A stretch of DNA of 64,000 nt from assembly GCF_011386835.1 (NCBI RefSeq), contig NC_088797.1:29388001-29452000 (forward strand). The letters are read 5' to 3'. Of this stretch, positions 21,501 through 64,000 are shown piece after piece. The notes beneath the pieces are model-generated. The model was not told the origin of the DNA. It worked only from the letters and a program-made list of their open reading frames with translations, and searched no databases. Source of the DNA: Chrysemys picta bellii (lineage: Eukaryota). The position numbers were made by a program, and so were the translations under genes. Positions within the stretch are counted from its first letter, which is position 1, and each line of letters begins with the position of its first letter.

Positions 21501-24424
21501 CTAGGACTCCTGGGTTCTGTCCCCAGCTCTGGGAGGCGAGTGGGGTGTAGTGGTTAGAGTAGGGGTGGCTGGGAGCCAGGACTCCTGGGTTCTAAGAGTA
21601 GGATGGAGTCTAGGGGGTTGGGGCGGGGGGGAGCCAGGATGCCTGGGTTCTATTCCCAGTTCAGGAAGGGGAATGCGGTCTAGTGGGTTAGAGCTGGGGC
21701 GGGAGAGGAACCAGGACACCTGGGTTCTGTTACCAGCTCAGGGAGGGGAGTGGGGCCTAGTGGGTTAGAGCAGTGGGGCTGGGAGCCAGGACTCCTGGCT
21801 CTGGCCCATGTAACCCACTCCTACCCCGCAGACGCTGTGCTGGAACGGGCCCTACATCGTTGTGTGCTGAAGCCTCTCAAACCAGTGCTGGCATCACGGC
21901 TGCGCAGGCTACGCGTGGCAGATGGGTCCCTGGGCCAGCTCCAGGAGAACCTGCGGCTGGTGCGGGAGCGGGGCCCTGGTGCCTTCCCAGCACGGGCGAC
22001 CCTGCCTAGCCCCCATGACACCCAGCGGGCACAGCGCAAACTGCTGCAGCTTCTGCATGCCTATTCGCCCAGCACCCAGGTGACACTGCTGCTGCAGGCC
22101 TGCAAGGGTGTCTACCGAGCCATGGGGGCAGCCCCGGGTACGGATCCCTTCATCCCTTCCCCCCTCCCCTCCTTCGCCCACGTGATGCTGCTCCTGCAGG
22201 GCTGTAAAGGTGTCTGCAGAGCCATGGGGGGTCCCCCTAGCACAGCCTTCCCGCCCAGCCTAACCTGCATGTCCCCTCCCCCTCCGCTCTTCCTCGCCCA
22301 GCACCCAGGCCTAGGAGAGCATCTCTGCAGCCATAGATCTGTCCCCAAGTACAGACAACCCCCATATGGCCCCCTGTTCCCCAGCACCATTCCCATATCA
22401 CCCAGCCTGGCCCCCTCCCTCACCTCCAACCTACTCATTCCTACAACCTCCTGATCCTCCCCCCATCCCCATAACCGACCCCTGTGTCCCTCCCCCATCT
22501 CACATATCCACCCAGGGCCCCCCCACCCTCCCCAGTCCCCCCGCCTGTGCACCTCACCCCATGCCTCCCTGGATTCTGGGATCCCTCCCCCATCCCTGCC
22601 CAGCCTGTGCTCTCCATGCTGCCCACAGCCCCCTGTTGCTGGGAGCCCCCCTCCCCCAGCTTGTGCTCCCAATGCCGCATGCATCCCCTGCTGCCGGGAC
22701 CCCCCCTCCTGATCCCCCTATGTTCCTGCTACATCCCTGCCAGCACCCACTCACTTGTCCCCTCTTCCCCTCAGATGGGAGCTATGGGGCGGACGAGTTC
22801 TTGCCGGTTCTGAGCTTCATCCTGGCTCAGTGCGACCTGCCCCAGTTGCTCATGGAGGCTGAGTACATGATGGAGCTGATGGACCCCAGCCAGCTCCTGG
22901 GGGAAGGTAAGGGAGACCCCTAGGCCCTCCACTACCCTTTTTCCTTGTCCCCCTGAGCCAGTCAGTCCCTGGGGCCAGATCAGAGATGGTGCCCCCTAGA
23001 GGGGAAAATCCCTGAGTCCGTTTACTTCCCTAAATGGGAGGGACCCACCTAATCCTCTGAACGTGAGCTCTGCGATCCTGGGGTGTGTAAACAGGGGAAT
23101 CTCGACTAGGAGAAGGGAGGTTCTGTTACCTCCGTGTGTGGCGCTGGTGCGGCTGCTGCTGGAATCCCGCGTCCAGTCCTGGTGCTCACAATGCAAGAGG
23201 GATACTGGTAAATTGGAGGGCTCAGAGAAGAGCCACGAGCATGACTAAAGGCTCAGAGAACAGGCCTCAGAGTGAGAGACCCCAGGAGCTCGATCTGTTT
23301 AGTTTGACAGAGAAAAGGCTAAGAGTGATCCCAGTCCAAGTACCTACGTGGGGAACAGAAACGGGAGAGCAGACGGCTCCTCAGTCTAGCAGCCAAAGGT
23401 CTAGCAAGAGCCAAGGGCTGGAAGCTGAAGTTGGACAAATTCAGACTGGCAATAAGGTGCACCTTTGTAAGTGAAGGGAATTAATCAGGGGAACAACCTC
23501 CCACGGGCTGCATTCTCCCTCGCTGGCAGTGTCTAAAGCAGGGTGGGATGTTTTTCTGAGATCCGTGCTAGTTCCTCCAGGAATCAATTCAGGGCAGCCC
23601 TGTGCAGAGAGGGGGCCAGCCTAGAGAATCCCCATGGGCCCTTCTGGCCTGACAATCTACGCCCCATCCTCCCCCAGGGGGCTATTACCTGACCACTCTC
23701 CAGGCCAGCCTGGCCCTGCTGGGGCGTTTCCATGAAGAGGAGCCCATGGAGCTGCGCCCTGATGTCCAGAGAGCCCTGAGTTGGCGGCACCAGAGCCCCT
23801 CAGGGCGGCCCCCTGGGAGCCCATGCCAGGTACGTGGGGAGGTGCTCTGGGGGGAGTCATTGACGGGGACTCCCTGCTACCCACCCAGTCCCTGCCCCCT
23901 CCCCTCCCTGCTATCCACCCAACTCCCGACCCCTCCTGACCCCTCCCCTGTCTACTCTCCGCTCCATCCCTACCCTCTTCCTTACCCCTCCCCACTGCCT
24001 GCACAGTCCCCCCATCACCCCTCACGCCTGCTCAGTCCCTATCCCCCATGTCACCCCATCTGCCTCAGTGCCCACTCAGTCCCTGCCCCCATCCCAATTG
24101 ATCCCTGCCACTCTTAGTCCCTCCCCCCGCCACATGCCCACTAAGTCCCTGACTTGCTCTGCCTTCCAGGACCCACCGCCTGAGAAAACCCAGGCCCCCT
24201 GCAGTGGGTGCCACTCCACCACACCTGCGCTGGGAGCCCAGGGGACGGTGGAGCAGCTACAGAGGCACCCCACAGACAACAGTCTCCCCCTGCACCCTGA
24301 GGGCCAGCACCAGCCCCAGGAGCACCCGGCCCAGTACCGCCACCCCGGGGAGATGGGACCTGGGCCGGGAACCCCACACAGGCTGCTCCGCGAAGCGGCT
24401 GTCGACCTGGATGAACCCCTCTGA
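18586..24424 (+). CDS. RIN1: Ras and Rab interactor 1 (SH2, RH, VPS9). Exons 18586-18611, 18796-18979, 19342-19456, 19657-19729, 20051-20142, 20598-21401, 21832-22137, 22775-22906, 23678-23829, 24170-24424; about 712 aa. Start codon and last exon are uncertain.
   Basis: Motifs PVYDVP, SLLDRLLLTQSVWLQL, TFLVRRSNT, SHKELEAISHLGLEFWSSSLN, KRSIKVRVSTETSSPLSPP, LRSMSDA, GADEFLPVLS and GEGGYYLTTLQASL match RIN1. All junctions are GT-AG and in phase (2139 nt). The gene is syntenic with BRMS1. Confidence 0.88.
21425..21800 (+). repeat. Tandem array (about 5 x 73 bp) of a MIR/tRNA-head-like unit
   Basis: Unit ggactcctgggttctatcccagctctgggaggggagtggggtctagtggttagagcagggggctgggagcca; many more copies occur across the window. 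Confidence 0.8.
23050..23610 (+). mobile_element. Degenerate CR1 LINE RT C-terminal fragment in a RIN1 intron
   Basis: Contains the CR1 ORF2-end signatures cctgggg-tgtgtaaacagggg, gtccagtcctggtgc and gggctggaagctgaagttggacaaattcagactgg. Confidence 0.75.
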
Positions 24425-42595: not shown

Positions 42596-44851
42596 TCAGA
42601 CGCTGGTCCGGCAGGTGGTCAGATGGGCCCCTGCAGGGGGGTGGGGAGGCCCCTTGCTCCCCGCACTGGTGACCCAGCGGTAGCACTGTGTGACGCTGCG
42701 GCTCTTGGCCCTGGCACCACAGCGGGTGCAGTACACGATGCCCAATGCCACCATGATCACCAGGAAGACGCAGAGGGGCACCAGCAGTGCCACCAGCAGC
42801 CACCGGTCATCCCGCTTCCTCCGTGCCCGCTCCCCACCTGGAGAGGTGCTGGGGTCCTCCGAAGGGGGCAGCGGAGCCCTGGCCCTGTCTGCTGAAGGGT
42901 CCCCTTCCCCCGCACTGTAGGGTGAGGCAGGAGCACCAGGGGACCTTGGAGATTTGGAGCTTGGGGGGCTGGTGCTGGGGGTTGGGGGGCCAATTGTGGG
43001 AGTGATAGCGGGGCTGGTGTGGGGAACTGGGGGGCTATTGGTGGGCTCTGGGGGGGCAGTGGATGTGGGAGGGATCAGGGTGGTGGTACTGGGGATTGGG
43101 GGGCTGGTGGTGGGGTCCAGGGGACCAGTGGTTGTGGAAGGGATTGGGGGGCTGGTGGTGGGGTCCAGGGGACCAGTGGTTGTGGAAGGGATTGGGGGGC
43201 TGGTGGTGGGGTCCAGGGGACCAGTGGTTGTGGAAGGGATTGGGGGGCTGGTGGTGGGGTCCAGGGGACCAGTGGTTGTGGAAGGGATTGGGGGGCTGGT
43301 GGTGGAGGGGCGAGGGGCTGAGTGGCCAGTGCTAGGGTGTGGGGCTGCAGGAGAGAGATCAGGGGGCGAAGCAGTGGGGTCGGGGAACTCCTGGATCAGG
43401 CTGAAAGGCTCGTCCGTCCCCAAAACCTGCAGCACCTCCGCCCCCCACTCCTGCTGGTTCCTGAAGTGTGGGTAGAAGGTCTGCTGCCTGGTGGCCAGCG
43501 CAGGGGGCTCTGCCAGGGGGGCACAGCTGATGCGGTCAGCCTCCAGCTCGTAGCCCTCGGTGCAGTAGCACTCAAAGCCGCCCACGTAGTTGACGCACAT
43601 CTGCTGGCAGACGCCGGGGATCTGGCACTCGTCGTTGTCGACACAGTGCTGCGGTGCCTCCTCGGCCGGGCTGAAGCCCAGGTGGCACAGGCACAGGTAG
43701 GAGCCCTCGGTGTTCTCGCACTGGTGCTCGCACGGGGCGGTGTTGCATTCATCCAGGTCGGCGCAGCCCCCGGCCTCGTCGTCCTCGTAGCCCACCTGGC
43801 AGCGGCATTGGAAGCCGCCAGGGAAGTTGTCACACAGCTGCTCGCACGGGCCCGTGGCACACTCATCCGTGTCCTCGCACGTGTGCCCGTCACTGGCCAG
43901 CGTATAGCCCACGGGGCACAAGCACCGGTACCCTCCGTCCTCTCCTGGCACGCACTGAAACTGGCAGGGGTGGTTCTGGCAGCCATCGGCTGGGGCGCAG
44001 GAGCGCCCGTCAGGCAGTAAGGCGTGGCCGGCGTGGCACTCGCAAGAGTAGCTGGGACCCTCATCCACGCACAGCTGCTGGCAGCCCCCATTGTCACCCT
44101 CACACCAGTCCCCCAGCTCCTCCCCGCACAGGGGCTCCTCCTTGGACCAGCCCACGGAGCCGTCGTCCCGCTGCATGCACAGCACCGAGACAGGGGCTGC
44201 GCCACCACAGGCCACGGACGCCACTGTGCCGAAGGGGATGTGGCTCAGGGTGCTGCTGACTTGGCCGAAGGGTGTTGTGTAGCTCACGGGCCCCGTCTCC
44301 TCCGTGGCCAGTCCGTGGCACATGCCGGCAAAGCCGAAGCGGCACAAGAAGCCGTCCACGGGTAGGGTGCACGAACCCTCCAGCCACTGGAAATTCTCCT
44401 GCGTGGCCAGGCCATAGCTCAGCACCACGCAGCGCGAGGCCGAGCAAGCGGTGCCCCCGGCCGGCTCGGCCTGCGCCCAGTTGGTGTAGAGCGTGTCTTG
44501 GTCGCCGGTGGTCCAGGTGAAACCACGCAGTGGGCGCTGGGGGAAGCACTGGCGTGGCTGGCGCTGCAGCCCGATCCAGAAGAGCCGCCGCTGCCCTGTA
44601 CCTGGGCCCGTGGCCTGCAGCAGCTCCGCCACCTGGGCGGCCTCCTCATGGCGCTTGAGCGTGGCCAGGTTCCCGCCACGCTCTCGGCAGCTCCGCCAGG
44701 ACTCCAGGAAGCTGCGGCGTTGGAAGAAGACAACGTAGCAGCCCTCAGGACCACAGGCAGCCTCGGGCCCCGGCCAGGCAGCCTCAGGCCCTGGCCAGGC
44801 GCCCCGCGCCGGCCCCACCAGCCCAGTGAGGAGCAGCCAGAGACGCAGCAT
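42596..44851 (-). CDS. CD248: Endosialin / TEM1, single exon: C-type lectin, sushi-like, EGF repeats, mucin stalk, TM, PDZ-binding tail. An upstream in-frame ATG lies at 44896.
   Basis: Signal peptide MLRLWLLL, FWIGLQRQPRQC..RPLRGFTWTTGDQDT, EGF/cbEGF repeats, RDDRWLLVALLVPLCVFLVIMVALGIVYCTRC and C-terminal TCRTSV. The ORF is intronless. Candidate AATAAA (minus strand) at 41787-41792. Confidence 0.96.
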   Translation of the reverse strand: MLRLWLLLTGLVGPARGAWPGPEAAWPGPEAACGPEGCYVVFFQRRSFLESWRSCRERGGNLATLKRHEEAAQVAELLQATGPGTGQRRLFWIGLQRQPRQCFPQRPLRGFTWTTGDQDTLYTNWAQAEPAGGTACSASRCVVLSYGLATQENFQWLEGSCTLPVDGFLCRFGFAGMCHGLATEETGPVSYTTPFGQVSSTLSHIPFGTVASVACGGAAPVSVLCMQRDDGSVGWSKEEPLCGEELGDWCEGDNGGCQQLCVDEGPSYSCECHAGHALLPDGRSCAPADGCQNHPCQFQCVPGEDGGYRCLCPVGYTLASDGHTCEDTDECATGPCEQLCDNFPGGFQCRCQVGYEDDEAGGCADLDECNTAPCEHQCENTEGSYLCLCHLGFSPAEEAPQHCVDNDECQIPGVCQQMCVNYVGGFECYCTEGYELEADRISCAPLAEPPALATRQQTFYPHFRNQQEWGAEVLQVLGTDEPFSLIQEFPDPTASPPDLSPAAPHPSTGHSAPRPSTTSPPIPSTTTGPLDPTTSPPIPSTTTGPLDPTTSPPIPSTTTGPLDPTTSPPIPSTTTGPLDPTTSPPIPSTTTLIPPTSTAPPEPTNSPPVPHTSPAITPTIGPPTPSTSPPSSKSPRSPGAPASPYSAGEGDPSADRARAPLPPSEDPSTSPGGERARRKRDDRWLLVALLVPLCVFLVIMVALGIVYCTRCGARAKSRSVTQCYRWVTSAGSKGPPHPPAGAHLTTCRTSV
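43092..43305 (-). repeat. Coding 48-bp VNTR (PSTTTGPLDPTTSPPI x4 plus partial) in the CD248 mucin stalk
   Basis: Identical units start at 43092, 43140, 43188 and 43236, with a partial copy at 43284. Confidence 0.95.
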
Positions 44852-46730
44852 CGTCCTGGCGCCCACGGCTGCCTGCTCGGCTCTGCGCCTCCGCATGGAG
44901 CCCCTGCCCTTCTCTTCCCCTCGGCGGGGAGGGGCAGGATGGGACAGTGCCCGCCCCTGCCCTTGTAAGGCAGAGAATTGGTCCCAGGCCCAGGGAGAGG
45001 GGGAGACAAGCTGGGAGGGGCAGCTGTGGGGATCGTGGATGGCCTGACCCAGAGGATGGAGGCAGGGTATGTGTGTGTGAGACCTTCCCTTGTGTGCAGC
45101 TGGATGAGAAATGCAGATCCCACTCCTCTCCGAGAAATGGGATAGATCCCCGGAGTCCTGGCTCCCAGCCCCCCTGCTCTAACCACTAGACATACCACTC
45201 CTCTCCTAGGGCTGGGGCTAGAACCCAGGAGCCCAGACTCCCCGCCACAGTGAATCTGCAGAGAATGGGTGTGTACAGTGACCATATGCTGTGGCTCACA
45301 CTGACACACACATACAAAGACATGTGCATATGCACACAACACTCACACACACTCTGCATACACTGCTACATCCCCCCCGCCTGCCCCAGTCCCAGACCTA
45401 GTTCAGCCCTTTGTTCCAGAAACCTGGAGGCTGGAACACTGGGCTGGAATTTGGCTCCTCACTCCCCCCGCCCCCATGCCCGGCTGGGAGCAGGGAGAGG
45501 CTCAGCGTGAGTTTCCTCCCCGCCATCCTCTCCAGGCCCTCATGCTGCTCAGGGCGATTCCCACGGGGAGCTGAGACCCTCAACAGGGAGCTGGTCCCAG
45601 ATTGGGGGAAGTCAGTGTGCACGTGGGTGTGCATGCAGAGGAGAGTGAGTGCATACAAAGGTGCGCATTGCATGGGCGAGAGCGGGAGCGTGGGGGGTGG
45701 GGACATAGAGGGATCAGAATTGTTCCTAGCCCTCACTTTCCCACACGTGTGAGTACCCCCTTGTGCAGCTTAGTTTGACATGCATGCACATGTGCACACC
45801 CATGTGCACTCTTGTGTGTGCATGCTGTGCACACACACACACACAAAAGCTCTCCTGTGCAAGCTCAGTTTCTTGTACCTTCTCACTTTCCCATGAAAGC
45901 ATACCCCTGTGTGTACACACATTCCTGGGCATGCACACCCATCTGTACACATACCCTCCCATGCATGCATTTTCCTGTGCATGTGCATACATACCCTCCT
46001 GTTCATGCACGTGTTCCTTACTTCGTCATACACACACTGGTGTGACCATTGTCCCATTGCACACCTGCACATATGCATGCATCCTCCCATGCCACCACAC
46101 ACCCATGCTACCACATTGTGTTCGCTGCTCCCACTCACAAATGTGTGTGCCATGCATGTGGCATGCACACCTGAGCATTTGCACATGTGCACTCACTTGT
46201 GAGCATACCCCTGGGCATTTGCACACGTGCTTTTCCACACACTCCTACCTGCTCACCCTGTCTGCTAAGCCAACTGGCAGTCCCTGGGGGCTCCATTCCT
46301 GGGGAGGCCGAGGCCAGCAGCACAGGTTCGCGAGGCTCTGGAACTCCCCCCAAGGCCAGGCGAGGGGAGACAGGGAAGGGTCGGAGCTCTGCAATCCAGG
46401 AATCCGGGGCTGCAGCCCCGACTAGGGGCAGGGATCGCAGCTGTCTCTGCTGTGAACCAGGTGTGCGTGTGCCTCTGTGTGTCAGGGGGTCGTGGTGTGC
46501 ATCTCTGCACGGGGGGCTGTGTGTGTTTGGCGGGCTTTGTGGCGGGGGTGTGTGGTGCATCTCCGGGGGGTTGTGTGTTTCGGTGTGTGTGGTGTGAGCC
46601 GAGCAGGGGAGGGTACAGTGGGCCCAGCCGCGGGGGCTGCAGGTCGGATGGAGCCGCAGCGCGGAAATGCATGGAATTCCTTGTGTGTGGGAACCAGGAG
46701 GGGGGCGGGCGTGGGACGTAGGGCCTTTCT

Positions 46731-48123: not shown

Positions 48124-49411
48124 CCAATGGCAGTAATCAGAAAAACAGGCCCCCCCACACACACACTTAAAAAGGTTCCCTTGGCCAGGAAACAATCATG
48201 GGGGGGCTCAGAGTTCCAGACCTGGACATGCCCTCGTGCCCCATGGCTGGCAGCCCTAGGGACTCTGTGTCATCACAGCAGCCCCCCGCCCAGAGCATCT
48301 CCCGTTATGAGTATGGAGGGAGCAGGGGAGCCACCCCGAGGCCTGACTCCTGCCCCTAGGGATGGGGGCAGATCCCCCAGGGAGGCCAGATTCAGCACTC
48401 ACAGTTACATGGCTGCTTGGTCCCACTAGGAGCTGGGCTGGGACCCTCCCCCACAGTCAATCCACTCATGGGACACAGAACAGGGACCAGCGCCCCATAG
48501 AGAGGAAAGGCCCCATATCTGAGCCAGCCTGTGGTTGAACCAGAGCTGGGACATACACTTCTTCTCATCCCTCCCTCCCCAGCAGAGACAGGAGACAGAG
48601 ACACTAAGAAGCAAAAACAATTTAAAAATCAGGGTAAAAAAACCCATTTACAGGTTTGTGTGTGCGCGCGGGGGTGATTTCCCTCCGCCACGTTTAATAC
48701 AGAGAATGCATCGCATGGGAATCCTGCCCCAGGCCCAGCAAACACTCCATGTCTGCACCCCAGCATTGCAGTGTGGAGACGGGGAGGCATGGAAAGAAGT
48801 GCCCCCCACCCCCTGAAGCTGGCTACACTCCCCACCCCAATTCAGTTTGTTGTGTCATTGATCCCTTTATTCCTCCCCTCAAATTTCCCCCCCAACACTC
48901 CCTTATTTGCTTCCCAAGGGCCAATCCCACAGGGATGGGGGGGGGCAGCTAGCCCCTCCCCCTGGTCCCTACAGCACATCCCCCAGGGTGTTAGCCAGGC
49001 TGCGGAGTGGGGGACTACCTGGCCTCACTGATCCCTCCCCAGCAGGGGCATCTCCCTGAGATCCAGCCCGAGACAGCCTTGTGTGAACCCCACTCTCTCC
49101 TGCCTCTAGCAGGCTGCTCCAGGGGAGGGAAGACATCACTGGCGTGGCCAGGGCAGAGCCCAGGAATTGGGACGGAGAGTGCCCTGGGCCTATGAGAGAG
49201 GCACACCCTCCCTTTCCCCACCCCACCCAGACCCAATCCCCTGGTACCATAATTATTCCCCCCTCCCCACCTCAGAAGAAAAGTTCCCAAAAGAAGCCCT
49301 GTGATTGGTTGGCCTGTTAGAAAGGCAGAATCAAGGCGATATTGACAGGGAGGAAAGGGTTAATGAAGAGATGGGGCGGCTGAACTAGTGGGGGGGGAGA
49401 CGGGGGCGTCC

Positions 49412-52400
49412 CTATCGCACAGTGACCCCCAGCTTCTCCAGGATGCGGGTCCCCTTTTCCAGGTACTCGGCTCGCTGCAGCCAGAAGGTATCCTTGTCCT
49501 TCATGATGTCGGCCAACACAGCGCCCCCCAGGAACACCATGTGCTTCCGCCGCGGTGGGTCCTCGATCCGGATTTTGAATTTCTGCAGGGGAAGAGAAGA
49601 CCATTTATTAAAAACGGGATCCCCAGGATTCAAACCCAGAGCCAGGAGAAGAGGCTCCGCCCCCTTGGCTATGGGAGGAGCCCGACTGGTCTCAGGCACA
49701 GGGTCAGTGGGATCAGGATTTCACCCCTGGATTTTCAGGCCAGAAGAGCTGTTCTGAACCCCTGCATCACCCCTGGGCAAATCCCCCTCACAGGGCAGGG
49801 GCCTCCTTGGCCCCCCATGCAGGTCAGTTGCAATGGATTGTGGGTGGCATTGGGGAGCTGAGCTGGCCTATCCCACACAGGGAGGAGACTGTAGGCCCCA
49901 TGCCCATTGCAAGAGCTAGGGTCCAGTGGGGCAGTGCCCATGCATCTCACATGGTGCCCACTCACCGACAGCTTCTCCACGTCGCCCTTGAGCACCCGCT
50001 CCAGGTAGAGCTGTTTGATCTCACGCTCCAGCCGGGAGGGCAGGCCCGGGTACATGGTGGAGCCGCCTGACAGTACAATGTGCTTGTAGAACTCTGCCCT
50101 GGGGAGAGGGATGGAGTGAGACAGACAACACCCCGTGGGAGGGGTCCTCGAGGCTCAACCCCACTGCATCCCCAGGATCTCCACTCCACCCCCAAACAAC
50201 TTCCACCAGGATCCCCCCCAACAGGCTTACCCCAGTGATTGCCTCCACTCACCTCCCAACACCCTAGGATCTTCCCAGCAACCCCCCTCCAATCGGCCCC
50301 CTGGGATCCACCAACAACCTCTCAATCCCCAATAACATCATCACCTCCCCTACTAGCTCACTCACACACACACAAAATCCCCATCAATAGTCTCGCCTTC
50401 TAGGCCGGCAGCCCCCCTCCCCCCCCCGCAGCGGCCCAGTGTTGAGGGAGGGGCTCCAGGCTCCACTTCCCACCCCCTTGCTCACCTGGTGTCGATATCA
50501 GCCGCCTGGATGGTGTTGAAGAGCAGCTCAGCCACACCCACACCCTCCACATTGATGAGGTGGGGCTGGAATAGGGCCTCGGGTGCCTCAAACCGCTCAC
50601 CCCCCACCTTGATCACACGCCCATCAGGCAGCTGGGGGGGGAGCAGAGGGAGAGGCCATCAGCAACACTGCCTGAGTCTGCAGTGAGCCTGAGCTGATGG
50701 CTCCAAGTGGGAGAATTGCTCCAGGCATCCCAATGAGGTGTTAACTCCCAGCCCCACTGCGCTAAGGTCCCCACCATTGCAGCAAGGGTCTCTCAATGGG
50801 GCAGGAGTGACCCACCCATCCACCAAGCAGAGACACAGCCCCAGCAGCTCCCTCACCATATAGGACTCCACCAGCACTGTGGTCTCCTGAGCCAGCTTCT
50901 GCTCCTGCTCAATGTTGTACCCCACGTAGCAGAGCTTCTCCTTCATCATCCGCACCGTCTCAAAATCCGCAGAGTGGTTAAAGGCATAACCCCGCAGCAA
51001 CAGGAGCTGCCAGGAGGGGGAGACACAGTCATGGGGGAACCTGCAGTACCAGCAGCTGCCAGAGGGGGAGACCATACTAACAGGAGCTGCTGGGGCCCCA
51101 CCCCCTCCCATAAAGGTCCCACCCCTCACTCTGGCCTCCTGTGAGGATCTGGGGACGATCTAGGCACTCTGAGTGGGGGCAGGAACTGGCTGCCTGGCTC
51201 CTTCCCACACAGGACCCTCCCTTTGGGGTGCAGCCTTTCACCTGCGTGACGCCCTGTTCGCCCCCACGGTGGGCGGAGAGTCCGAAGGCCGGGGGCAAAG
51301 CGGTAACACAGAGCGGCGGCGACGCGAGGCACTCGGCACAGCATCGCCCTAGACAACAGACTGGCCCCCCCAGGAGAGCTGGGTAGCGGGGGGAGACGGC
51401 CTGGGCAGCGAGGTTGCGGGGCCGGGCTCGCCTGGTGCAGCTGAGAGGGAGTCACCTGTCAGAGGAGGCTGGACGGTTATGAAGGGGAGGAACTGAGCTC
51501 TTGGGAGGTTTGGACCATTTTCGACAGAGTAGCCTTGAGGCAGGGGCCCTGCCTGAGTCCAGCTGGGTGGAGGCCTCCCCAGGGAAGGGGAGCTAGTGGC
51601 AGGCACTGTAGGCAGGAGGTCGGGTCTGCAGGGTCTGAGCTCTCTCTGCTGCGCGTGATGAGGTACAAGAGCAGCAGGTGAGTCTCGGGAGGCTTAAGAC
51701 ATCCAGGGACCCCGGGGCGTGGATTCCCCTCACAGCAGTCCAATGGGCAGCTAGCAAATCTATGACACACCCTCACCCAACTCTCACCTTGATGAGGTAG
51801 CGGGTGATGTCCCGTCCCGCAATGTCCAACCGCCGGGTGAGGTGGGGCAGGGAGAAGCCCTCATAGACAGGGCAGATGTGGGTCACACCATCCCCAGAGT
51901 CCACCACCACCCCAGTCAGCAGGCCTGAAGTGGAAGGGAGAGGTTACTGTGCTGAGAGGCAATACGCCTATCTACCCTGGTATCCCACCTCCAAAGGCAC
52001 CAGGACTGGCCACTTCAGAGGAAAGGTGACAATGGCCCCTTAGTGGCCAAACAGGAAATAACATGCCCAGAGGGGATGTCTCCCGTGCCCGCCCTCCCAA
52101 AGCAGGGCTCCCCTGGTCATTCCCTGCACTTCCCACCCCAAACCCTGCTCAGCTCTCAGCCTCCAGGGCATCCACTGGCAGTGAGTTCCCCAGGCCAGCA
52201 ACCTGGGCAACTGGTTCATTCACCTGCCATATGGCAGGGTAGATTTCACCACTGTGACACCTTCCCCTGCATTCTCTCTACTGCCCCTGACTCTGCCCTC
52301 CCCTCTCCTCTCCCCAGACCTCTTGCACCCTCCCCCTCTGGCCCTCCCATACCTCACCTGCTCTGCCCCTTCCATTCCCCTTCATGCCCCCACCCCCACT

Positions 52401-55400
52401 CCAGCCCCAGCGCCCCCTCACCCTGGGCGTAGAGAGTCAGCACGGCCTGGATGGCGATATACACGCCTTCAAACTGGTACGTCTCGAACATCACCTGGTG
52501 GGAGAGGAGATATCATGGGCACAGCCCTGCCCCTGCCCTTCAGCCCCAACCTCCTGCCCCTGCTACCCAGCCCTGGGCGCCGCACCCGACGTCCCTCAAG
52601 CTCTGCCAGTGCCCCTCAGTCCCACCCTGCAGCCCCTCCCCCTGGGCTGTGCTGATACCCCTCAGTCCCAACCTAGCCCCCTGCCCCCCCAGGCTGTGCT
52701 GATGCCCCTCAGTCCCACCCCACAGCCCAGCCTGACCTCAATGATCTTCTCGCGGTTCTTGGTGGGGTTCATGGGGGGCTCGGTGAGCAGGATCTTGCAG
52801 CTGCGGGGGTCGACGTTGAGTTTCTCGGGCCCAAAGGTGTAGTCCCACAGGTACTTCATGTCATCCCAGTTGCGCACGATGCCGTTCTCCATGGGGTAGT
52901 TCACCTCCAGCATGGAGCGCAGCTCGCTGGCCTCATCCCCTACCATCAGGTCCTGGGATGGGCAGGGGGCAGATTTGAGACACTAGCCCTTTGGCTAAGC
53001 CACCACCACAGGCCAGGGCCCCTCCCTCCAAGGAAAGGCTCCCCTTCAAAGCCCCCCTCCCCTTACCTGACCCCTGTGGGACATGCCCCCCCTGCCAGAG
53101 CCTGACCTTGATCTCGATGTTGCCCACGCGGGCGGTGGAGCGGATGATGGGGCGCCCGACCAGCGCGGGGAAGATGTGCTCAGGGAAGTTGGAGCCGGCA
53201 AACCCGCACTTAACGAACTGGGGAGAGAGAGAGGGAAATGAAACAGGTGACAACCCCCCAAGTCTCTGCCCAGCCACACAAGATCCCCCCGACCTGGGGA
53301 CCAGGCCAAGCTGGGGGGAGAACTGCCCCATTCCTCCGTCCAGCTGGTTTAAAGACACCAGGGAGACATGCTGGGGGCCACCTGGCTACTACTGTTACCC
53401 TCGCAACACCTAGAGGGTGTTCTGAGGTGGAGGGGGGGTCCCAGGCTAGCTGGGCCCACCAGGATGACCGGGGGTAGGGAGCAGAAGGATACCAGGCTGG
53501 GTAGTCACTGGAAGTATCACCCTTTAAATCCCTACAGAATTTCTCCCCTCAGCCCCAAATCCTCTTGGCCCAGCCCTTAGCCCCAGACACCCCTGCCCCA
53601 GGGGGAGGGAGCCAAATTGCTGCAAAGAACTGTGTCCAATGCCCCGTGGGCTGGCCTGACCCTCCCTGTCTGCACCCCAAGCGCCAGCAGGAGGTGCTAA
53701 ATGCATACAGGGTCACTAGCCCCACCTCCGTCCCCCTCCGCCCCCCCCAGTCATGGAGGGAAGTAGCCCTGGGCGCAGAGTCTAGAGGAAGTGACACTTC
53801 TGCTTTTGTAGACACTCACCACTCCCTCCCCCCTTCTCCCCCCCCCATGGCAAGGGAGAGGCTCCATCAGTATCCCCATGTAGGGAGATGTGTATGCCCT
53901 GCTATTACGACTATTAGGGTAGTGCCTAGAGACCCTGTAAAGCAGTGGTTCAGCCAAGCAGGGCCGGCGTTAGACTCGCTAGGTCCCAGGGCAGAAAGTC
54001 GAAGCCCTGCTGCATGGGACTGCAGCCTGGGGCCCCGAGCCCCATCACCCGGGGCTGAAGCCAAAGTCTGAGCAACTTAGTTTTGTGGGGCCCCCTGTGG
54101 AGTGGGGCCCCAGATGATTGTCCTGCTTGCTACCCCTTACTGCCAGCCCTGCAGAAAAACAGTTGTTTTGGCCCAGGAGGGTCGTGGAGTTTTTATAGCA
54201 TGTTGGGAGGGCCTGCAAAAGAAAAAGGTTGAGAACCCCTGCTGTAACGGCCTAAGATAATATCCCTTTAAATAGTGTGAGAGTCCTTTCGGGGTGCTCA
54301 CCGTGTTCTAAGGCTTTAGAAGTCAGAGCAGCAGTATGAGAGCAGGGCCCCCATTGTGCCAGGTACTACCTAGACCTACAGTGAGAGACAGGCCCTGCCC
54401 CGAAGAACTCTGTCTGAACAGACAAGGGGTGGGAGGGGAAACTGAGGCCCAAAGAGGGGAAAGCTCCCACCCAAGGTCACACAGGAAGATGGTGGCATAG
54501 CTACAATTAGAGTCCTGAGTCCCAGTCCCACCCCCACTACCCACTCAACCATGCTGCTTAATTTTGTTCCGATCTGTGGATGACCTCATTACCCATCTCA
54601 GTGCCCTGCCACCTCTCCAAGCCTGGCCTCCTGAACACCCAATGACAGCGAGCTCTGCAAGTTAATTAGAGTTTGTGTAAAAGCACTGGGCCTGATCCTC
54701 TCACCTGCCCTAGGGGATTAGGCCCTCCAGGGTGGCAGGCAATGGACCCATTACTCCCTCTGAGCAGTGTAAGTTTCACCCAACGCTCCTTGGTTCCCAG
54801 ATTAGGCAAGAGTGTCCCCTAGGCCTTCCTCACTCCCATTAACCTGTGGAACCCTCTGCCACTGGACGCAGCTTGCAGATTAATTCTGCCTCATGTTGAA
54901 CAGCAGGCCCAGGCAATCATAGCAAAAGCACTGGCAGACTGGCCCTGCCTGCTGTGGGAGCGTGAACCCTGCAGCGAGCGAGCGGATGTGGAGAAAGAGG
55001 AAATGCAAGAACTGAGCCTGCTTCTGCTAGCACAACACATGCACTCACACCAGCAGAGAGGCACCCGCAGACCCAGCCTGCAGGAGTCAGGCACATCCCC
55101 TCTGGCCCTATCGCTCCTGGCAGCACCCTGTATTTCTGGGCAATCTCCCCTTCTGGCTACAGACTCTGCGTGGCCAAAGCCTCTAGAACAACAGCCCTTA
55201 CAGAGGAATCTCATTTCTGATTCCTTTTACAGGCACTTTCCTGGCATCCTCCCTGCAAAGGAGTTTTGCTTCATGTTTCATTTACAAATTACCTTCCACT
55301 TTGGCATAATGCAGGCCTGTCTCCCGTTTAACCCCCAAGTGAGCAAGTGTGGGCGGGGCTGCCATCCTGCCAGGCACTGCACAGATCCAGACCGAGATCA

Positions 55401-58337
55401 GGGCCCCTATTGTGCCAGGCGCTGAACAAACCCTGACCGAGATCAGGGCCCCCACTGTGCCAGGCACTGCACAAACCCTGACCAAGATCTGGGCCCCCAC
55501 TGTGCCAGGCACTGCACAGAGCCCCTCCCCCCTGGCTGAATTGGGACCCCTTGTGTTGGGTGCTGCACGCAGCTGAGATCGGGGCCCTGGTGAGGACAGC
55601 CAGGTTGTAGACACTTCTGACAAACGCTTGGATAGATCCAGCAAGCAGTGTCGGAGTTCCCTGCCGAACACACAGCATAGCTGTTAACCTGCGGAACTCA
55701 CATGGCAATTGCTAGACTGGCTCAGAGTCAAGGCCCCTCTAGCCCAGAATCCTGTCTCTGACAGTGACCATTGTCAGTGGAATTGGTCAGTAGAAGGTGT
55801 AAGACTCCTCCAGTAGGCAATGGGGAATAATCGGCCTCACATTAGCCTCCCCCTGCTCTCTCACTAATGGGTAGAGATTAGCTCAAGCCCTGGAGCCTGA
55901 GGTTTCATCCCCTGCCAGGATTTGTGTCAGAATCAACAATTCCAACTCTGCCGATTCTGCTTCTCCACAGAAATGACCAATCCCTTCTTGGACTTTGCTG
56001 CGTTTTCAGCCTCAGCAATGTCCTGTGGCTGTGAGTCCCACAGGCTAAATACGCCTTGTGTGAACAGCATTGCCTTCTCTCAGCCTTCACCTCGTGGCAA
56101 AGCTCTCCAATGAAGCAGGTTAAAAAGAGTTTCTCACTTGGAAATATAGAAGAAAAGGCTCTTACGATGTTCACTGTAATGTACATCGCACACAGAGGCT
56201 TCTTTACAGACAGACAGAGGAGTGCCTATGGAAGTGGGGGTCTGCCCCACGCAGGTGATGAGAGGGTTAATGTGGGCCTGAGAGCCCAATTAACACAGCT
56301 GGCTGCACCTGGAAGATGGGCCAGGCCTCAGTGAAGATGAAGCTCAGCTGGGGGGGAGCCGGATGGAGCTATAAAAAAAGGAAGTGGGGTGAAGCTAAAA
56401 AAAAGGTGGAAGAACTCTACATCCTGGTGGGGGAGGGGGTGAGACATGAGAGTGCCTTGAGTGGCCTAGTAAGGATCTGATTGGGGATGGGGGTGCTGAG
56501 AAGGCACCACATTGAAGCAAGTTCCTGTGGCTGACCTGACCCAAGGGTAGGGCCCAGATCTCTGGGAGCTTGTTAAAGAGCCCAGAGGGGAGCTGGGGAT
56601 GAGGCCTGAAGAAAGGCTAAGGGGTAGGATAGAGACCAGGGAGACAGTGACAAGGCATCTGATAGCACAGAGCTTGGCTGCATATGCTAGGGGCCCTGGA
56701 CTGAACCCCCACAACCAGCCCCTGGGGGGAGGTAGTGTGAGGCCTCTGAGAAGGGGATACAGGTGATTGAAAGAGAGGCTGGTGTGCAGGGCTGTAGGGA
56801 CCACAGAGCCTGGAGTTGAGCACCAAAGATCCAGCGTAAGGATGGGGACTGCTGTCAGTTTAGCTTTTGGTACCCAAAAGGGGAGGGGTAGAATAGAGGT
56901 GTGAGCTGGCTGAGTGGTGAGAAAAGGAACTCCACCATGGTTGGTGTGACCATGGGTAGGGGAAGTAGCAAGGAAAGAGCTGTTACTCCTCAGTTCTCCA
57001 CAAGGGAGAGCACCAGAGTGAGCCCACTCTCCTACAGGGCTAGACAGGACTGAAAGGAGATTTTCTAGTCAAGGAGGTCATCACTACCCTGCCTTGAGAA
57101 TCCAGCTCCGGGGGGGGGGGGGGTGTTTGCCCCCCCACTGCTGGGGGAGGCTGTTCCAGAACCTCCCTCCTGTGAGGGGCACAAACCTTCTTCTCACTTC
57201 TAGCCTCAGCTGTTCCCTGGCCAGTTTAACCCCATTTGTTCTTGTGCCCACTTAAACTTCAAGAGCTCTTCTCCCTCTGGGGTTTCCTTAGAGGGAGCAA
57301 GCAGATCCCTTCTCTGGCCAGGCTGAAGCGACTCAGCTCTTTCAGGCTCCTCCCCTAAGATCGGCTCTCCATTCCTCTGATCAGCCTAGGAGCCAGTTTC
57401 TCTGTTGAATGGGGTGAGCAGAACTGCACACAGTAATTCCTGATGTGGTCTTACCACTGCCTTGTCTAATAGTATTAATGCTTCCCCCTCACCAATGGAG
57501 GTGCCTTGCTTACACTGGATATACAAAGTCCCCCCTACACAAAGCAATTCAGCAGAGGGGATGAGTCAGGGTGGGCTGATAGCTGAGATTCCTGGGTTCT
57601 ATTCTTGGCTCTGCCCCTGAGCTGCTTTGTGACCTCCAGCAAGTCCCTTTTCCTGCCTCAGTTTCCCTTCCTACCCTTTGTCTATTTAGATGGTGAGCTC
57701 TGCAGGGCAAGGACTGTCTCTCACTGGGTGGCTGGGCAGCACCGGGCACAAGGGGTCTCGAAGCTTGGTCAGTGGGTCTGGCACAAGGGCCCTTGATTTC
57801 AGGCTGGGAGTGCAGTTCCCACCGTAATGCAAATAAGAAACTGAAATGGGCAAACAGGAAGCGCCAACGCTGAGATGCTGGCGGAGTCGCTGGGCCCCTT
57901 CCCCACCCGGGCCAGCACCGCCGGGCGAACCCTGTCCGGCCAGGGGAACTGCCGGCCAAGCCGAAACAGTCACCGCACCCACAGGCCACACTGGCCCAGT
58001 TACTCCATCTGCTCCTCCACCTCCCTCACCGGAGAGCCAGGACCCCGCACCGCACCCCGGGGAGCGGAGCGGGGCGAGGCTCTTCCGGCGGCTGCAAAAC
58101 CCTTTAAGCCGATTGCTTCTTGCCGGTGCCAGTGGGAGGGCCCGATCCCCCCCCCCCCTGCTCCTTCCGGGGCCCGATCCCCACCCCGAACCGCGGTGGC
58201 AGCGAGACTGGGCCGGGTCTAGGTCCCGAGCCGCGGCTCACGGCCGCCCTTGCACCCAGCCAGGGGTGGGGCCGAGGCTGCACACTCACCCCCGTGCCAT
58301 TGTCGCACACCACCACCCTGCGGCCCTGGCTGTCCAT
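49412..58337 (-). CDS. Actin-related protein 2 paralog (ARP2-like), 394 aa. Exons 58337-58290, 53217-53107, 52952-52737, 52494-52422, 51924-51788, 51006-50857, 50631-50486, 50098-49966, 49582-49412
   Basis: [39 protein letters not shown]...[30 protein letters not shown]...LEKLGVTVR*. The nine GT-AG exons (48, 111, 216, 73, 137, 150, 146, 133, 171 nt) are in frame with no stops, and exon 1 sits in a CpG island. No symbol is given because orthology to ACTR2 itself is doubtful. Confidence 0.95.
53943..54241. mobile_element. Probable nested hAT MITEs in ARP2-like intron 1
   Basis: Outer ends cagtggttc...ttgagaacccctg; inner element cagggccggcgtt...tgccagccctg at about 53959-54150. Confidence 0.5.
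55366..55525 (+). repeat. About 45-48-bp tandem repeat x4
   Basis: gtgccaggcactgcacaaaccctgaccgagatcagggccccc recurs. Confidence 0.75.
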
Positions 58338-59434
58338 GGGGGCTCCGCCTCTCGCTGCCCTGCGCCGTCTGAGCCACGGAACCGCGGTACTAGCCCAGTG
58401 ACCCGGCTCCCAGCGCAGGAAACCAGCCCCGCTGATGTAACGTCCTGGGCTGGGACCGCGTCGGGGGCGGGGTGTGTCTGTGTGCGACGCGCTGCTGCCC
58501 CCTGCTGGGGAGAATCAGAAAAGTGTGTGGGGCGGGGGCAAAGCGGGAGGCGGGGGGGGGGGGGGCACTGCCTTTCCCTCCGCGGGAAAAAGCTGCTTTC
58601 AGTATTCACCTTGCAGGTAGAGCCACACACACAGCGACAGCCCGGGGACTCTTGGCGGTTCATGCCGGGGGTCTGCTTCTTGGGGCGGCCAAGGGGGGAG
58701 AGGTCATACTGTCTGGGTTGCCCCCATCACCGCAGGGGCTCAGCACCTCTCTCTCCACCCTTCCCCCCAGGAGGCAGGGCAGCGCTGTGAGCCCCACTGC
58801 ACAGAGGGGGGACTGAGGCCCAGTCTACACACCCCGGCCTGGCCCACAGCAGCTGGCTTGGGCTAATGGGGCCCTGGTTGCAGGGCTGTAAAATTGCTGT
58901 GTAAACATTCAGGTTTGGGCTGGAGCCGAAGCTCTGGGACCCCAAGAGGGGGGAGGCTCCCCTGGCTCCAGCTGGAGCCGGAATGCCTGCCCAGCGAGTT
59001 TACAGCCCTGCACCCTGTGGGCGTCTACTTGCTGGGCAGACATACCCTGGGGCTCTAGATTCCTAGCGCTTAAGGCCAGCAGGGACCGAGATCATCCACC
59101 CTGATCTCCCGTCTAGCACAGGCCTGACCTCTCACCCAATTCCCCCTCTATTGAGCCCCAAGACATAGTTAAACCAAAGCATTTCAGTCTCCAGAGACTA
59201 ACCTGTTGTGAGCCCCAGGCAGATAACAGGGGAGGTTGAGGGGCCCCCAATGCCCGGGGCTAATGCAGTGGCAGGGAATTGCTGAGGTGAGTCACGCCCA
59301 GCGGATCCCAGCAGGCGACCTGTGCCCCATGCTGCAGAGGGAGGTGAAATCCCCCCAAGGTCCCTGCCAATCTGACCTGGGGGAAATTCCTTCCCATCCC
59401 CTAGCCTGGTGATCAGCTGGACCCTGAGCATCTG

Positions 59435-59704: not shown

Positions 59705-60559
59705 AGCATCTGGGCAGCCTGCACCAGCTTGGCAGCGAGAGAAAAGATTCTGTGAACAGGCTCAGAGTCCAGTGCCCACCTTTCCTCACCCTCCTCCTGG
59801 TGTCCTGTCTCCAGCTGTGGCCAGCCCTGATGCTTCAGAGGAAGATGGGGGTGGGGGGAGAGGGGAGAGGGGAACCAACCATTCAACCAACCCAGAATGG
59901 ATCTGGTCCATTGTGCATCAGCCAAAAAAGTGACTTGGCCAAGGGGACACCAGGAAGCTGGTGGGAAAGGGAAGTGAAGCCAGGCCAGTGCCCTGGCCCC
60001 TGAACCAACCTTCACTGTCCTCCTCCGAATGGGCAAAGAAGGATACAGGAGGCCAAGGAAATTTTGAGGAACAGTTAAGAGTTTGCAGAGGCCACTGGCC
60101 CCTCAATGTGTCCCCAGGTCCCCGTAGTGGAGATAGGGCAGAAACCCAGCTCGAAATCCACGGGGAGTTCCTAGTGTGTGGGGGAGGGTCCACATACCGC
60201 CCCCCCCATGAGCATCACTGCTCAGCAGGAAGTGGGGACCAATGCACAGACTCTCATGCCCCCCAACCCACAGCAAGCGCCCTGCCCCCCAGTCTAGCTC
60301 TGCTCCCCCCCGTCCAGCTCTGATCAGCTCAGTTCCCTAATTCAGCTTCAGTCCCCTCAATACAACTCTAGCTTCCCTCCTCCGGATCAGCTCAGCCCCC
60401 AATCCAACTCTAATCCAGCTTCAGTGCCGCCATCCGGCTCTGCTTCCCCCGATCAACTCAGCCCACCCCCGCTCCGGCTCCGATCCCCCCCCCCCAGTTC
60501 TAGCCTTTTCCATCCCTTCTCGCACCTGCATAGTAATAAAAGCGCCTCGCCCCATCCCC

Positions 60560-60838
60560 CCACGAGTGACGCAGCGGCTGCGGGCAGGGGGTGCACGCGT
60601 GGCTGGGGGGATCCCTGCCTGCGGTGGGGTGGGGGGGAGGCGGGGGCAGGGCAGGGAGGGGCGGGGGTGGCCGTGGTGGTCTCGGGGCCTCCCCCACTCA
60701 CACCCCGCCCCGGGGGGAGGGCAGTTCCGCTCCAGCACTGCCGGCGGAGACAGCAGCAATGCAGGGCTATTCATCCTGGCGGCGCGACGCAGGCGGCTGC
60801 TGAGCCAGGCTGCGGGGGAGCTGGGGCCGCGCCGAGGG
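60560..60838 (+). promoter_or_regulatory. PELI3: CpG-island promoter and probable non-coding first exon of PELI3
   Basis: CpG-rich, with GC boxes and a TGACGCA half-CRE, ending in the strong donor GAGGG/GTAAGC at 60838/60839. Confidence 0.55.
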
Positions 60839-61101
60839 GTAAGCGGGGGGTGTCGGGGCTGCTGGGGGGATTACATGGGGGGGACAGAAGCAGAGGGGCG
60901 GCTGGAGATGGGAACCTCAGTGTCAGCCAGGGTCACCTCCTCTGTCCTTCCCTTCACAGCCCTGCAGCCATCCCTCCATCCCTCCCTCCCCTGTCCTGTA
61001 ACCCTCCCTTCCTCCATCCCTAGTCCTGTAACCATCCCTCCCTCCCCAGTCCTGTAACCATCCCTCCCTCCCTTCCTCCATCCCCAGCCCTGTAACCATC
61101 C

Positions 61102-61230
61102 NNNNNNNNNNNNNNNNNNNNNNNNNNNNNNNNNNNNNNNNNNNNNNNNNNNNNNNNNNNNNNNNNNNNNNNNNNNNNNNNNNNNNNNNNNNNNNNNNNN
61201 NNNNNNNNNNNNNNNNNNNNNNNNNNNNNN
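61102..61230. other. Assembly gap (N run) following a cctgtaaccatccctccc tandem repeat
   Basis: Run of N. The repeat at about 60960-61101 runs into the gap. Confidence 0.99.
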
Positions 61231-63853: not shown

Positions 63854-64000
63854 ATGGTGCTGGAGGGCAGCCCCGAGGCCGTCAACTCCCAGTCCCTGGA
63901 TCTGCGGCGCTCCTGCCCCAAGGGCTCCCGGGTCTTCCCCTCTGCTGGAGAGGGCTCCCTGCTGAACAAAGAGGCGGTGAAGTATGGAGAGCTCATTGTG
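63854..64000 (+). CDS. PELI3: E3 ubiquitin ligase Pellino 3, first coding exon (runs off the window)
   Basis: The acceptor ctttctctgcag/G is followed by MVLEGSPEAVNSQSLDLRRSCPKGSRVFPSAGEGSLLNKEAVKYGELIV. MVLEG and KYGELIV are the PELI3 N-terminal signature. Confidence 0.88.
   Translation, partial: MVLEGSPEAVNSQSLDLRRSCPKGSRVFPSAGEGSLLNKEAVKYGELIV

Follow-up and report, generated by a model that had tools for sequence, protein, structure and literature searches.

An Expressed Second ARP2 Gene in Chrysemys picta bellii, Probably an Ancient Duplicate of ACTR2

Analysis of a 64,000-nucleotide stretch of Chrysemys picta bellii DNA (hereafter, the window) revealed an intact gene for actin-related protein 2, here called ARP2L, distinct from the canonical ACTR2 of the same genome. 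We consider it probable that ARP2L is a functional second ARP2 that arose as a duplicate of ACTR2 before ray-finned fish and tetrapods diverged, with the early vertebrate whole-genome duplications as its most likely origin.

Gene Structure of ARP2L

ARP2L is an intact nine-exon gene located on the minus strand at 49412–58337 of the window. Its coding sequence of 1185 nt encodes 394 amino acids and a stop codon, and all eight introns show GT..AG borders. The first-pass annotation had described a complete gene of this structure with a CpG-island start, located between CD248 and a head-to-head PELI3, and both its structure and its position were borne out by the features listed below.

20489..22920, plus strand: RIN1-type gene exons; domains RIN1 and VPS9
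42596..44896, minus strand: single-exon CD248-like gene adjoining ARP2L downstream, 766 aa (ORF with Lectin_C, THBD and EGF domains)
48611..49411, minus strand: ARP2L 3' UTR, about 750–800 nt (RNA contig ends at 48611–48660; ATTAAA signal at 48698)
49412..49582, minus strand: ARP2L exon 9, coding part and stop, with seven paralog-specific residues at 370–385 (gene model, RNA contigs)
49966..50098, minus strand: ARP2L exon 8 (gene model, RNA contigs)
50486..50631, minus strand: ARP2L exon 7 (gene model, RNA contigs)
50857..51006, minus strand: ARP2L exon 6, with Y202, Q235 and T237/T238 (gene model, RNA contigs, residue comparison)
51788..51924, minus strand: ARP2L exon 5, with the DSGDG phosphate-binding loop (gene model, RNA contigs)
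52422..52494, minus strand: ARP2L exon 4 (gene model, RNA contigs)
52737..52952, minus strand: ARP2L exon 3, aa 54–125 (gene model, ARP2 chain match, RNA contigs)
52953..53106, minus strand: ARP2L intron 2, only 154 nt, without a D-loop microexon (microexon search, RNA contigs)
53107..53217, minus strand: ARP2L exon 2, aa 17–53, with the D-loop (...IEIK) at its end (gene model; joint 52951/53106 in four RNA runs)
58290..58337, minus strand: ARP2L coding exon 1, ATG at 58337, 16 codons (GT donor; exon 1–exon 2 splice in RNA contigs)
58000..58499, no strand: CpG island over ARP2L exon 1 and promoter (GC 0.72, CpG o/e 0.72)
63854..64000, plus strand: first coding exon of PELI3, divergent from ARP2L and cut by the window end (softshell-turtle Pellino start)

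The splice between exons 1 and 2 was seen in RNA contigs, where the loose end behind 53218 corresponds to window positions 58291–58320. The 5' UTR continues upstream of exon 1. The transcription unit extends over 9.7 kb, with a coding span of 8.9 kb, versus 42 kb for ACTR2 of the same genome.

The window is identical to CM062324.1 of GCA_011386835.2 (100% over the 22.3 kb compared), whereas the canonical ACTR2 (P0341) was found on another chromosome of that assembly, CM062320.1, so that the window gene is not the sole ARP2 of this genome. The eight intron positions are all common to ARP2L and this ACTR2, and the retained introns exclude a retrocopy, as the first-pass annotation had argued. An assembly artefact and contamination were likewise ruled out: besides the introns, the RNA is spliced and the synteny is conserved in a second turtle.

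Sequence Comparison with Canonical ARP2

Exons 3 and 9 of ARP2L matched solved ARP2 chains with E values of 3e-43 and 2e-28, respectively, well above actins, and PF00022 was present in the annotated 394-aa product. The full-length protein is 93–99% identical to vertebrate ARP2. In the database searches, exon 3, a related full-length protein, and orthologs were queried as proxies for the spliced 394-aa protein.

Canonical ACTR2 (chains in PDB 1K8K and 6YW6; P0341) resembles ARP2L in its length of 394 aa, in its nucleotide-binding loops, and in Y202, T237, and T238, all three of which are kept in ARP2L. The two proteins of the same genome nevertheless differ at 26 of 394 residues (93% identity), none of them in the DNGTG and DSGDG loops, and they belong to separate clades and different chromosome blocks. 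The substitutions noted in the first-pass annotation were recovered: the "about two dozen" changes correspond to 24 mismatches with mouse-type ARP2, the C-terminal cluster of seven to seven changes within residues 370–385 relative to solved human ARP2, and the L>Q just ahead of the phospho-regulatory ETT motif to L235Q, two residues before the conserved T237/T238. By the actin alignment, the 370–385 cluster would presumably map to subdomain 1, on its barbed-end face.

A further difference concerns the D-loop. ACTR2 of the same genome contains a D-loop microexon (NNKKM), located in its counterpart of ARP2L intron 2. No such microexon was found in the introns of ARP2L, where only chance candidates without RNA support occurred, or in any fetched protein of the ARP2L clade, and the teleost zgc:101810 clade described below is likewise without microexon isoforms. 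Lacking the alternative microexon, ARP2L is expected to be made only in the short D-loop form.

Phylogenetic Position and Orthologs

With eight invertebrate sequences as outgroups, ARP2L is placed among the vertebrate ARP2 genes, and the vertebrate part of the tree divides into three lineages separated by short internal branches. The canonical ACTR2 clade (support 98/89) does not include ARP2L, in agreement with the initial view of the gene as a sister of ACTR2. A sauropsid ARP2L clade was recovered at 99/94, and bichir and sturgeon attached to it at 88/80. The node linking this larger group to the teleost zgc:101810 clade had a support of 55/0. The tree was built without the ZFIN genes actr2a and actr2b, and ARP2L was sampled from turtles, lizards, snakes, and ray-finned fish. 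The 90%-identity clusters used merge the ARP2 paralogs, because ARP2 proteins are so similar, and part of each cluster was covered. One tunicate ARP2 fell among the outgroups; P0231, a sequence seemingly closer to ARP2L, proved to be an ARP2 of this tunicate type.

Tetrapod and ray-finned members occur in the ARP2L group as well as among the canonical genes, and one copy in each clade was found in Acipenser (a genus represented by two species) and in Albula glossodonta (one species). The tree places the ACTR2/ARP2L duplication earlier than the divergence of ray-finned fish and tetrapods, each lineage having the two copies. A recent duplication or translocation of ACTR2 specific to reptiles, which the 93% identity between the two proteins might suggest, is very improbable: a sauropsid-only duplication was rejected by the AU test (p=0.00165), synonymous sites between ARP2L and ACTR2 of the same genome are saturated, and the bichir and sturgeon genes group with ARP2L, the sturgeon gene lying in 11q13-type synteny.

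ARP2L persists in turtles, in lizards and snakes, and in bichir and sturgeon. Its orthologs in Pelodiscus (XP_006129766.2) and Hemicordylus (XP_053133866.1) differ from it by 5 and 8 aa, respectively, and are both named "actin-related protein 2-B-like" by NCBI, which agrees with the suspicion that the gene might already carry an ACTR2-like annotation. The snake orthologs ("actin-related protein 2-like") are strongly accelerated, with 35 differences, and the protein of Polypterus (bichir), under the same name, differs by 16 aa. These reptile, snake, and bichir names were assigned automatically and are no guide to orthology.

Zebrafish zgc:101810 (LOC493612, NP_001007773.1) and its relatives form a clade spanning teleost orders, a non-canonical ARP2 lineage that the tree puts on the side of ARP2L, with about 55 aa differences from ARP2L. 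This clade most likely represents the same gene as ARP2L; the joint node is weak (55/0), and the case comes mainly from synteny. In Nelusetta and Brienomyrus, the zgc:101810-type gene and a RIN-family gene stand tail-to-tail, which is also the turtle arrangement if CD248 is disregarded. A SIX homeobox gene also flanks the teleost genes and was not seen in the turtle window.

Conserved Synteny and Origin of the Duplicate

A distance of 5.5 kb separates the ATG of ARP2L from the first coding exon of PELI3, whose sequence closely resembles the beginning of the annotated Pellino gene adjoining the ortholog in the softshell turtle Pelodiscus, where the order Pellino/ARP2L/CD248 is identical to that of the window. 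Once CD248 is set aside, the RIN1-type gene of the window is convergent with ARP2L, the same layout as that of the teleost pair; the teleost RIN-family neighbour showed 38–54% identity to the window RIN1 pieces in a comparison made without RIN2 or RIN3. In Acipenser, DPP3 adjoins ARP2L. The comparison of paralogous blocks sets ARP2L, found beside PELI3, CD248, RIN1, or DPP3, against canonical ARP2, found beside a SPRED gene in Takifugu (pufferfish). The block CD248-RIN1...PELI3-DPP3 is taken to be the counterpart of human 11q13.2, and PELI1 and RAB1A are presumed to be the neighbours of ACTR2.

An ohnolog is consistent with the 11q13-type synteny (PELI3, CD248, RIN1, DPP3) of turtle, sturgeon, and teleosts. 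The first-pass annotation had inferred that ARP2L is the whole-genome-duplication sister of ACTR2; the ancient duplication, the 11q13-type synteny, and the position outside the ACTR2 clade agree with this, and a whole-genome duplication is the probable source. An ancient small-scale duplication before the bony-vertebrate split, placed by chance within an 11q13-type block, so that ARP2L would be no ohnolog, appears unlikely to us. Such an event would be compatible with the present data in two respects: they set no date for the duplication with respect to those of the whole genome, and the paralogous pairing was tested directly only for PELI3 next to ARP2L and for canonical ARP2 next to a SPRED gene. 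However, on established human maps the families adjoining ARP2L (Pellino, RIN) have their paralogs spread over this paralogon, and a three-way division of the tree, with internal branches as short as those seen, is expected for duplications near the base of the vertebrates. The retention of all eight intron positions, which makes ARP2L a DNA-level copy, was also counted against a small-scale event.

Expression and Selection

Expression of the gene was confirmed by RNA contigs from four runs, belonging to three studies and two species, in which all ARP2L exons were joined at the predicted borders. In about ten further RNA-type runs, 30–38% of the words were present, about the share of exons plus UTR, and the softshell-turtle ortholog was found at full length in RNA contigs. 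ARP2L is under strong purifying selection, with dN/dS about 0.02: the ratio was 0.025 in the comparison with Pelodiscus (dS 0.23) and 0.016 in that with Hemicordylus (dS 0.89). Between turtle and lizard, ARP2L accumulated 8 protein differences versus 3 for ACTR2, a rate about three times faster.

These values bear on the view that ARP2L, although transcribed, is redundant or decaying and has no role of its own. The snake orthologs have evolved much faster (35 differences from turtle, versus 8 for lizard), as such a view would allow. We nevertheless regard it as highly unlikely, given the low dN/dS in both the turtle–turtle and turtle–lizard comparisons, the intact reading frame with all key motifs kept, and a persistence from before the divergence of ray-finned fish and tetrapods that is unexpected for a redundant gene.

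Proposed Role of ARP2L in the Arp2/3 Complex

With 93% identity to ACTR2, the ARP2L protein would be expected to take the Arp2 position in the seven-subunit Arp2/3 complex, joining ARP3 and ARPC1-5 in nucleating branched actin, and to give rise to an isoform-specific complex, and alternative Arp2/3 complexes containing ARP2L may accordingly be envisaged from the sequence. Three main changes set the protein apart from canonical ARP2, namely the seven-residue cluster within the last 25 residues, the polar residue 235 beside the phospho-threonines, and the restriction to the short D-loop form. It is possible, although we advance this only tentatively, that ARP2L defines a separately regulated, tissue-specific class of Arp2/3 complexes in non-mammalian vertebrates, with a short D-loop, a polar residue beside the activating phospho-threonines, and a remodelled C-terminal surface, which mammals have lost; an ancestral, alternatively spliced ARP2 would then have been divided between two genes, with ACTR2 keeping the D-loop microexon. 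ARP2L is not known from mammals and was presumably lost there.

Isoforms of Arp2/3 subunits are known from mammals (ARP3/ARP3B, ARPC1A/B, and ARPC5/5L) and from Drosophila, which has testis paralogs of the Arp2D type (PMC12632905; PMC7038667). Like ARP2L, they are paralogous subunits that could diversify the complex. Here, in contrast, it is ARP2 itself that is duplicated, and in vertebrates; moreover, the Drosophila Arp2 paralogs are young and fast-evolving, whereas ARP2L is ancient and highly conserved. Arp2 diversification has been called unique to flies in a 2025 preprint. No discussion of a vertebrate ARP2 paralog was found in the searchable literature, in which queries for "actr2b" were swamped by the activin receptor. 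ARP2L is publicly annotated and present in gene trees but apparently unstudied, and the advance would lie in its recognition and characterization rather than in the discovery of a new sequence.

A strongly conserved, expressed second ARP2 older than the bony-vertebrate split would add a fourth variable subunit to ARP3, ARPC1, and ARPC5 in reptiles and ray-finned fish. In addition, ARP2L provides a natural experiment for two presumed tuners of Arp2/3 activity, the D-loop microexon and the T237/T238 region. Zebrafish zgc:101810 makes the question of a second ARP2 directly testable, and this zebrafish ortholog is included among genes with known epidermal expression in the list of a preprint (10.1101/2020.12.13.422569).

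Gene Structure and Identity of ARP2L

The second ARP2 gene of the window, ARP2L, comprises nine coding exons on the minus strand, running from 58337 down to 49412, with a joined coding sequence of 1185 nt (394 aa and a stop codon) and GT..AG ends in all introns. Its exons 3 and 9 matched solved ARP2 chains (E values of 3e-43 and 2e-28, respectively), with actins far behind, and the complete 9-exon, 394-aa ARP2 with canonical splice sites proposed in the first-pass annotation was thus borne out. Exon 1 lies inside a CpG island at 58000-58499 (GC 0.72, CpG o/e 0.72), as expected from the CpG-island start described earlier.

Features of the window around ARP2L
4625-5815, B4GAT1-type open reading frame
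13265-13699, plus strand, open frame without a Pfam match
about 20.5-22.9 kb, plus strand, RIN1-type exons
42596-44896, minus strand, downstream of ARP2L, CD248-like single-exon open reading frame of 766 aa with C-type lectin, thrombomodulin-like and EGF domains
from 63854, plus strand, upstream of and divergent from ARP2L, first coding exon of PELI3, closely matching the start of the Pellino gene beside the softshell-turtle ortholog

The CD248 frame downstream and the divergent PELI3 exon upstream agree with the claimed position between CD248 and PELI3, head-to-head with the latter. Where about two dozen substitutions had been estimated, 24 differences were counted between ARP2L and mouse-type ARP2; the C-terminal cluster of seven was located at residues 370-385, with solved human ARP2 as the reference, and the L>Q change is L235Q, two residues ahead of T237/T238 of the phospho-regulatory motif. 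The earlier observation is confirmed in every checkable detail.

Two ARP2 Genes in One Genome

The CD248 frame was matched exactly in record CM062324.1 of the NCBI assembly GCA_011386835.2, and a 22.3-kb locus fetched from this record was 100% identical to window positions 32596-54896. In the public annotation of this record, the ARP2L position is already occupied by an actin-family gene of 394 aa, as had been suspected. A search for a separate canonical gene found ACTR2 on another chromosome of the same assembly (CM062320.1); its product, P0341, is common to other emydid turtles and shows only 5 residue differences from mouse-type ARP2. The two genes of this genome differ in 26 of 394 residues and 269 of 1182 nucleotides, with a synonymous divergence too saturated for a Nei-Gojobori estimate. 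All eight intron positions are common to both genes, and therefore ARP2L is not a retrocopy, as had been argued from its retained introns. Introns, synteny and RNA together exclude both a retrocopy and an assembly artefact.

Phylogeny of ARP2L

ARP2 proteins were gathered via exon 3, a full-length relative, and eight opened clusters, and a maximum-likelihood tree of 59 sequences was rooted on eight invertebrates. Mammals, amphibians, reptiles and the canonical teleost copies formed a canonical ACTR2 clade (98/89). Outside it, the sauropsid ARP2L clade (99/94) grouped with bichir and sturgeon (88/80), and a teleost clade contained zebrafish zgc:101810 (99/99); a branch with ARP2L and this teleost clade on one side had negligible support (55/0). 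A constraint uniting reptile ARP2L with reptile ACTR2 was 27 log-likelihood units worse and was rejected (AU p=0.00165). One copy of each type was found in the single species Albula glossodonta, and in two Acipenser species between them. The tree, the AU test and the presence of both copy types in fish indicate that the duplication is older than the divergence of ray-finned fish from tetrapods. The proposal that ARP2L is a recent duplication or translocation of ACTR2 is rejected on the grounds of the AU test, synonymous-site saturation and the orthologs in fish.

Nearest relatives of the window protein, with their NCBI names and differences from it
P0327, Pelodiscus: actin-related protein 2-B-like, 5 differences
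P0351, Hemicordylus: actin-related protein 2-B-like, 8 differences
P0338, Polypterus: actin-related protein 2-like, 16 differences
P0164, P0166 and P0267, snakes: actin-related protein 2-like, 35 differences

The automatic names ("actin-related protein 2-A", "2-B", "2-B-like", "2-like" and "zgc:101810") are applied across the canonical and paralog clades and are therefore useless for orthology.

Synteny of the ARP2 Genes

Gene order around ARP2 genes
Pelodiscus: Pellino gene (divergent), ARP2L, CD248-like gene; order identical to the window
Acipenser: ARP2L adjoining a Peptidase_M49 gene (DPP3)
Nelusetta and Brienomyrus: zgc:101810-type gene tail-to-tail with a RIN-family gene (assigned to family level, not to RIN1 specifically)
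Takifugu: canonical ARP2 adjoining a WH1+Sprouty (SPRED) gene

If CD248 is disregarded, turtle ARP2L and RIN1 show the same arrangement as the teleost zgc:101810-type and RIN-family genes. Established human maps place CD248, RIN1, PELI3 and DPP3 together at 11q13.2, and ACTR2 next to SPRED2 at 2p14, not far from PELI1. A whole-genome-duplication pair, as previously suggested, would be expected to show such a distribution; less probably, ARP2L may stem from an ancient small-scale duplication. A small SIX-family homeobox gene (256-259 aa) was present directly upstream of the teleost paralog at the zebrafish (L006) and filefish (L009) loci; no SIX gene was seen in the turtle window.

Expression of ARP2L

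RNA contigs from four RNA-type runs, covering two closely related species and three studies, were aligned to ARP2L. The contigs skip precisely the seven introns between exons 2 and 9 and run on from exon 2 into sequence unique to 58291-58320, which is exon 1; thus all eight splices are RNA-supported, and the gene is transcribed and correctly spliced. The contigs reach about 750-800 nt beyond the stop codon, ending at 48611-48660, with an ATTAAA signal at 48698. About ten more small runs (five studies) contained 30-38% of the sampled words of 48600-53300, roughly the share of exons and UTR, contig depth giving no ranking of expression level. The softshell-turtle ortholog was assembled at full length in RNA contigs. 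One lead on tissue use comes from a preprint (10.1101/2020.12.13.422569), which lists the zebrafish ortholog with genes whose epidermal expression is known and found it enriched in a cell cluster of the basal epidermis.

In the 3' UTR, contigs departed from the assembly in two places: two runs had 19 nt inserted behind 48851, and three runs had one additional G behind 48936. These are either polymorphisms or small assembly errors. Tandem repeats occur in intron 1 (55368-55518, 45 nt x3.4) and intron 3 (52610-52717, 47 nt x2.3). In two runs, unusual contig joints of low depth and loose ends at 52599-52635 coincide with the intron-3 repeat, probably owing to copy-number variation.

Selection and Residue Differences

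The dN/dS ratio of ARP2L was 0.025 against Pelodiscus (dS 0.23) and 0.016 against Hemicordylus (dS 0.89), indicating strong constraint. Between turtle and lizard, the ARP2L protein has changed about three times faster than ACTR2 (8 versus 3 differences). A decaying redundant copy is contradicted by a dN/dS of about 0.02 and by the retention of ARP2L since before ray-finned fish and tetrapods diverged. Snake ARP2L is much accelerated, with 35 differences from turtle versus 8 for lizard, while snake canonical ACTR2 differs from that of turtle in only 2 residues; these sequences suggest relaxed or changed selection on ARP2L in snakes.

Comparison with outgroups placed changes on both branches: canonical ACTR2 fixed T/S102, L321 and N370, and sauropsid ARP2L gained R7, Y87, E/D134, Q/R235, Q374 and L379, with R7, D/E134 and Q235 common to sauropsid ARP2L, bichir and sturgeon. 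None of the 26 ARP2L-ACTR2 differences falls in the DNGTG or DSGDG nucleotide-binding loops or at Y202/T237/T238.

The D-loop Microexon

ACTR2 of this genome contains a 15-nt D-loop microexon (NNKKM) with good splice sites at 28354-28368 of its fetched locus (L007), within the 6.5-kb intron between exons 2 and 3. In ARP2L, the equivalent intron is only 154 nt long; it contained no credible microexon candidate and had no RNA support for one. The orthologs of softshell turtle, lizard, sturgeon, filefish and zebrafish yielded no canonical-like candidate either. In a set of about 140 fetched proteins, vertebrate microexon forms (N[NKS]KKM) were confined to the canonical clade. According to a 2025 preprint (PMC12632905), conservation of this microexon spans more than 600 million years, and in flies it changes how Arp2/3 functions.

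Proposed Function of ARP2L

ARP2L is an intact and ancient gene under constraint, and it is transcribed with correct splicing. Its protein would occupy the Arp2 position of the Arp2/3 complex, which would give these animals two kinds of complex. Functional differences are likely to lie in the absence of the long D-loop form, in the polar residue 235 beside the activating phospho-threonines, and in the seven-residue cluster at 370-385. By alignment with actin, this cluster would belong to the barbed-end face of subdomain 1, which binds the C-helices of activators and the first subunit of the daughter filament.

The gene is publicly annotated under inconsistent automatic names; a literature search found no paper treating it, only gene lists, and the same preprint describes flies as having "uniquely" diversified Arp2 (PMC12632905). 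On these grounds, ARP2L is a real and already annotated gene that has apparently gone unrecognised as one of the Arp2/3 subunit isoforms, a known class, and it is readily testable in zebrafish.

Other Features of the Window

The open frame at 13265-13699 is presumably the C-terminal part of BRMS1, which fits the order B4GAT1-BRMS1-RIN1-CD248 of human 11q13.2. Between RIN1 and CD248, a 256-aa open frame (28443-29210, minus strand) with a weak GIY-YIG nuclease domain match (E 2e-5) may be a mobile-element remnant. A second GC-rich stretch at 60500-61230 (GC 0.71, CpG o/e 0.50) abuts an assembly gap of 129 N (61102-61230) and may represent a promoter or 5' exon belonging to PELI3 itself, in which case the ARP2L and PELI3 promoters would be separate, about 2.5 kb apart, rather than a single shared one.
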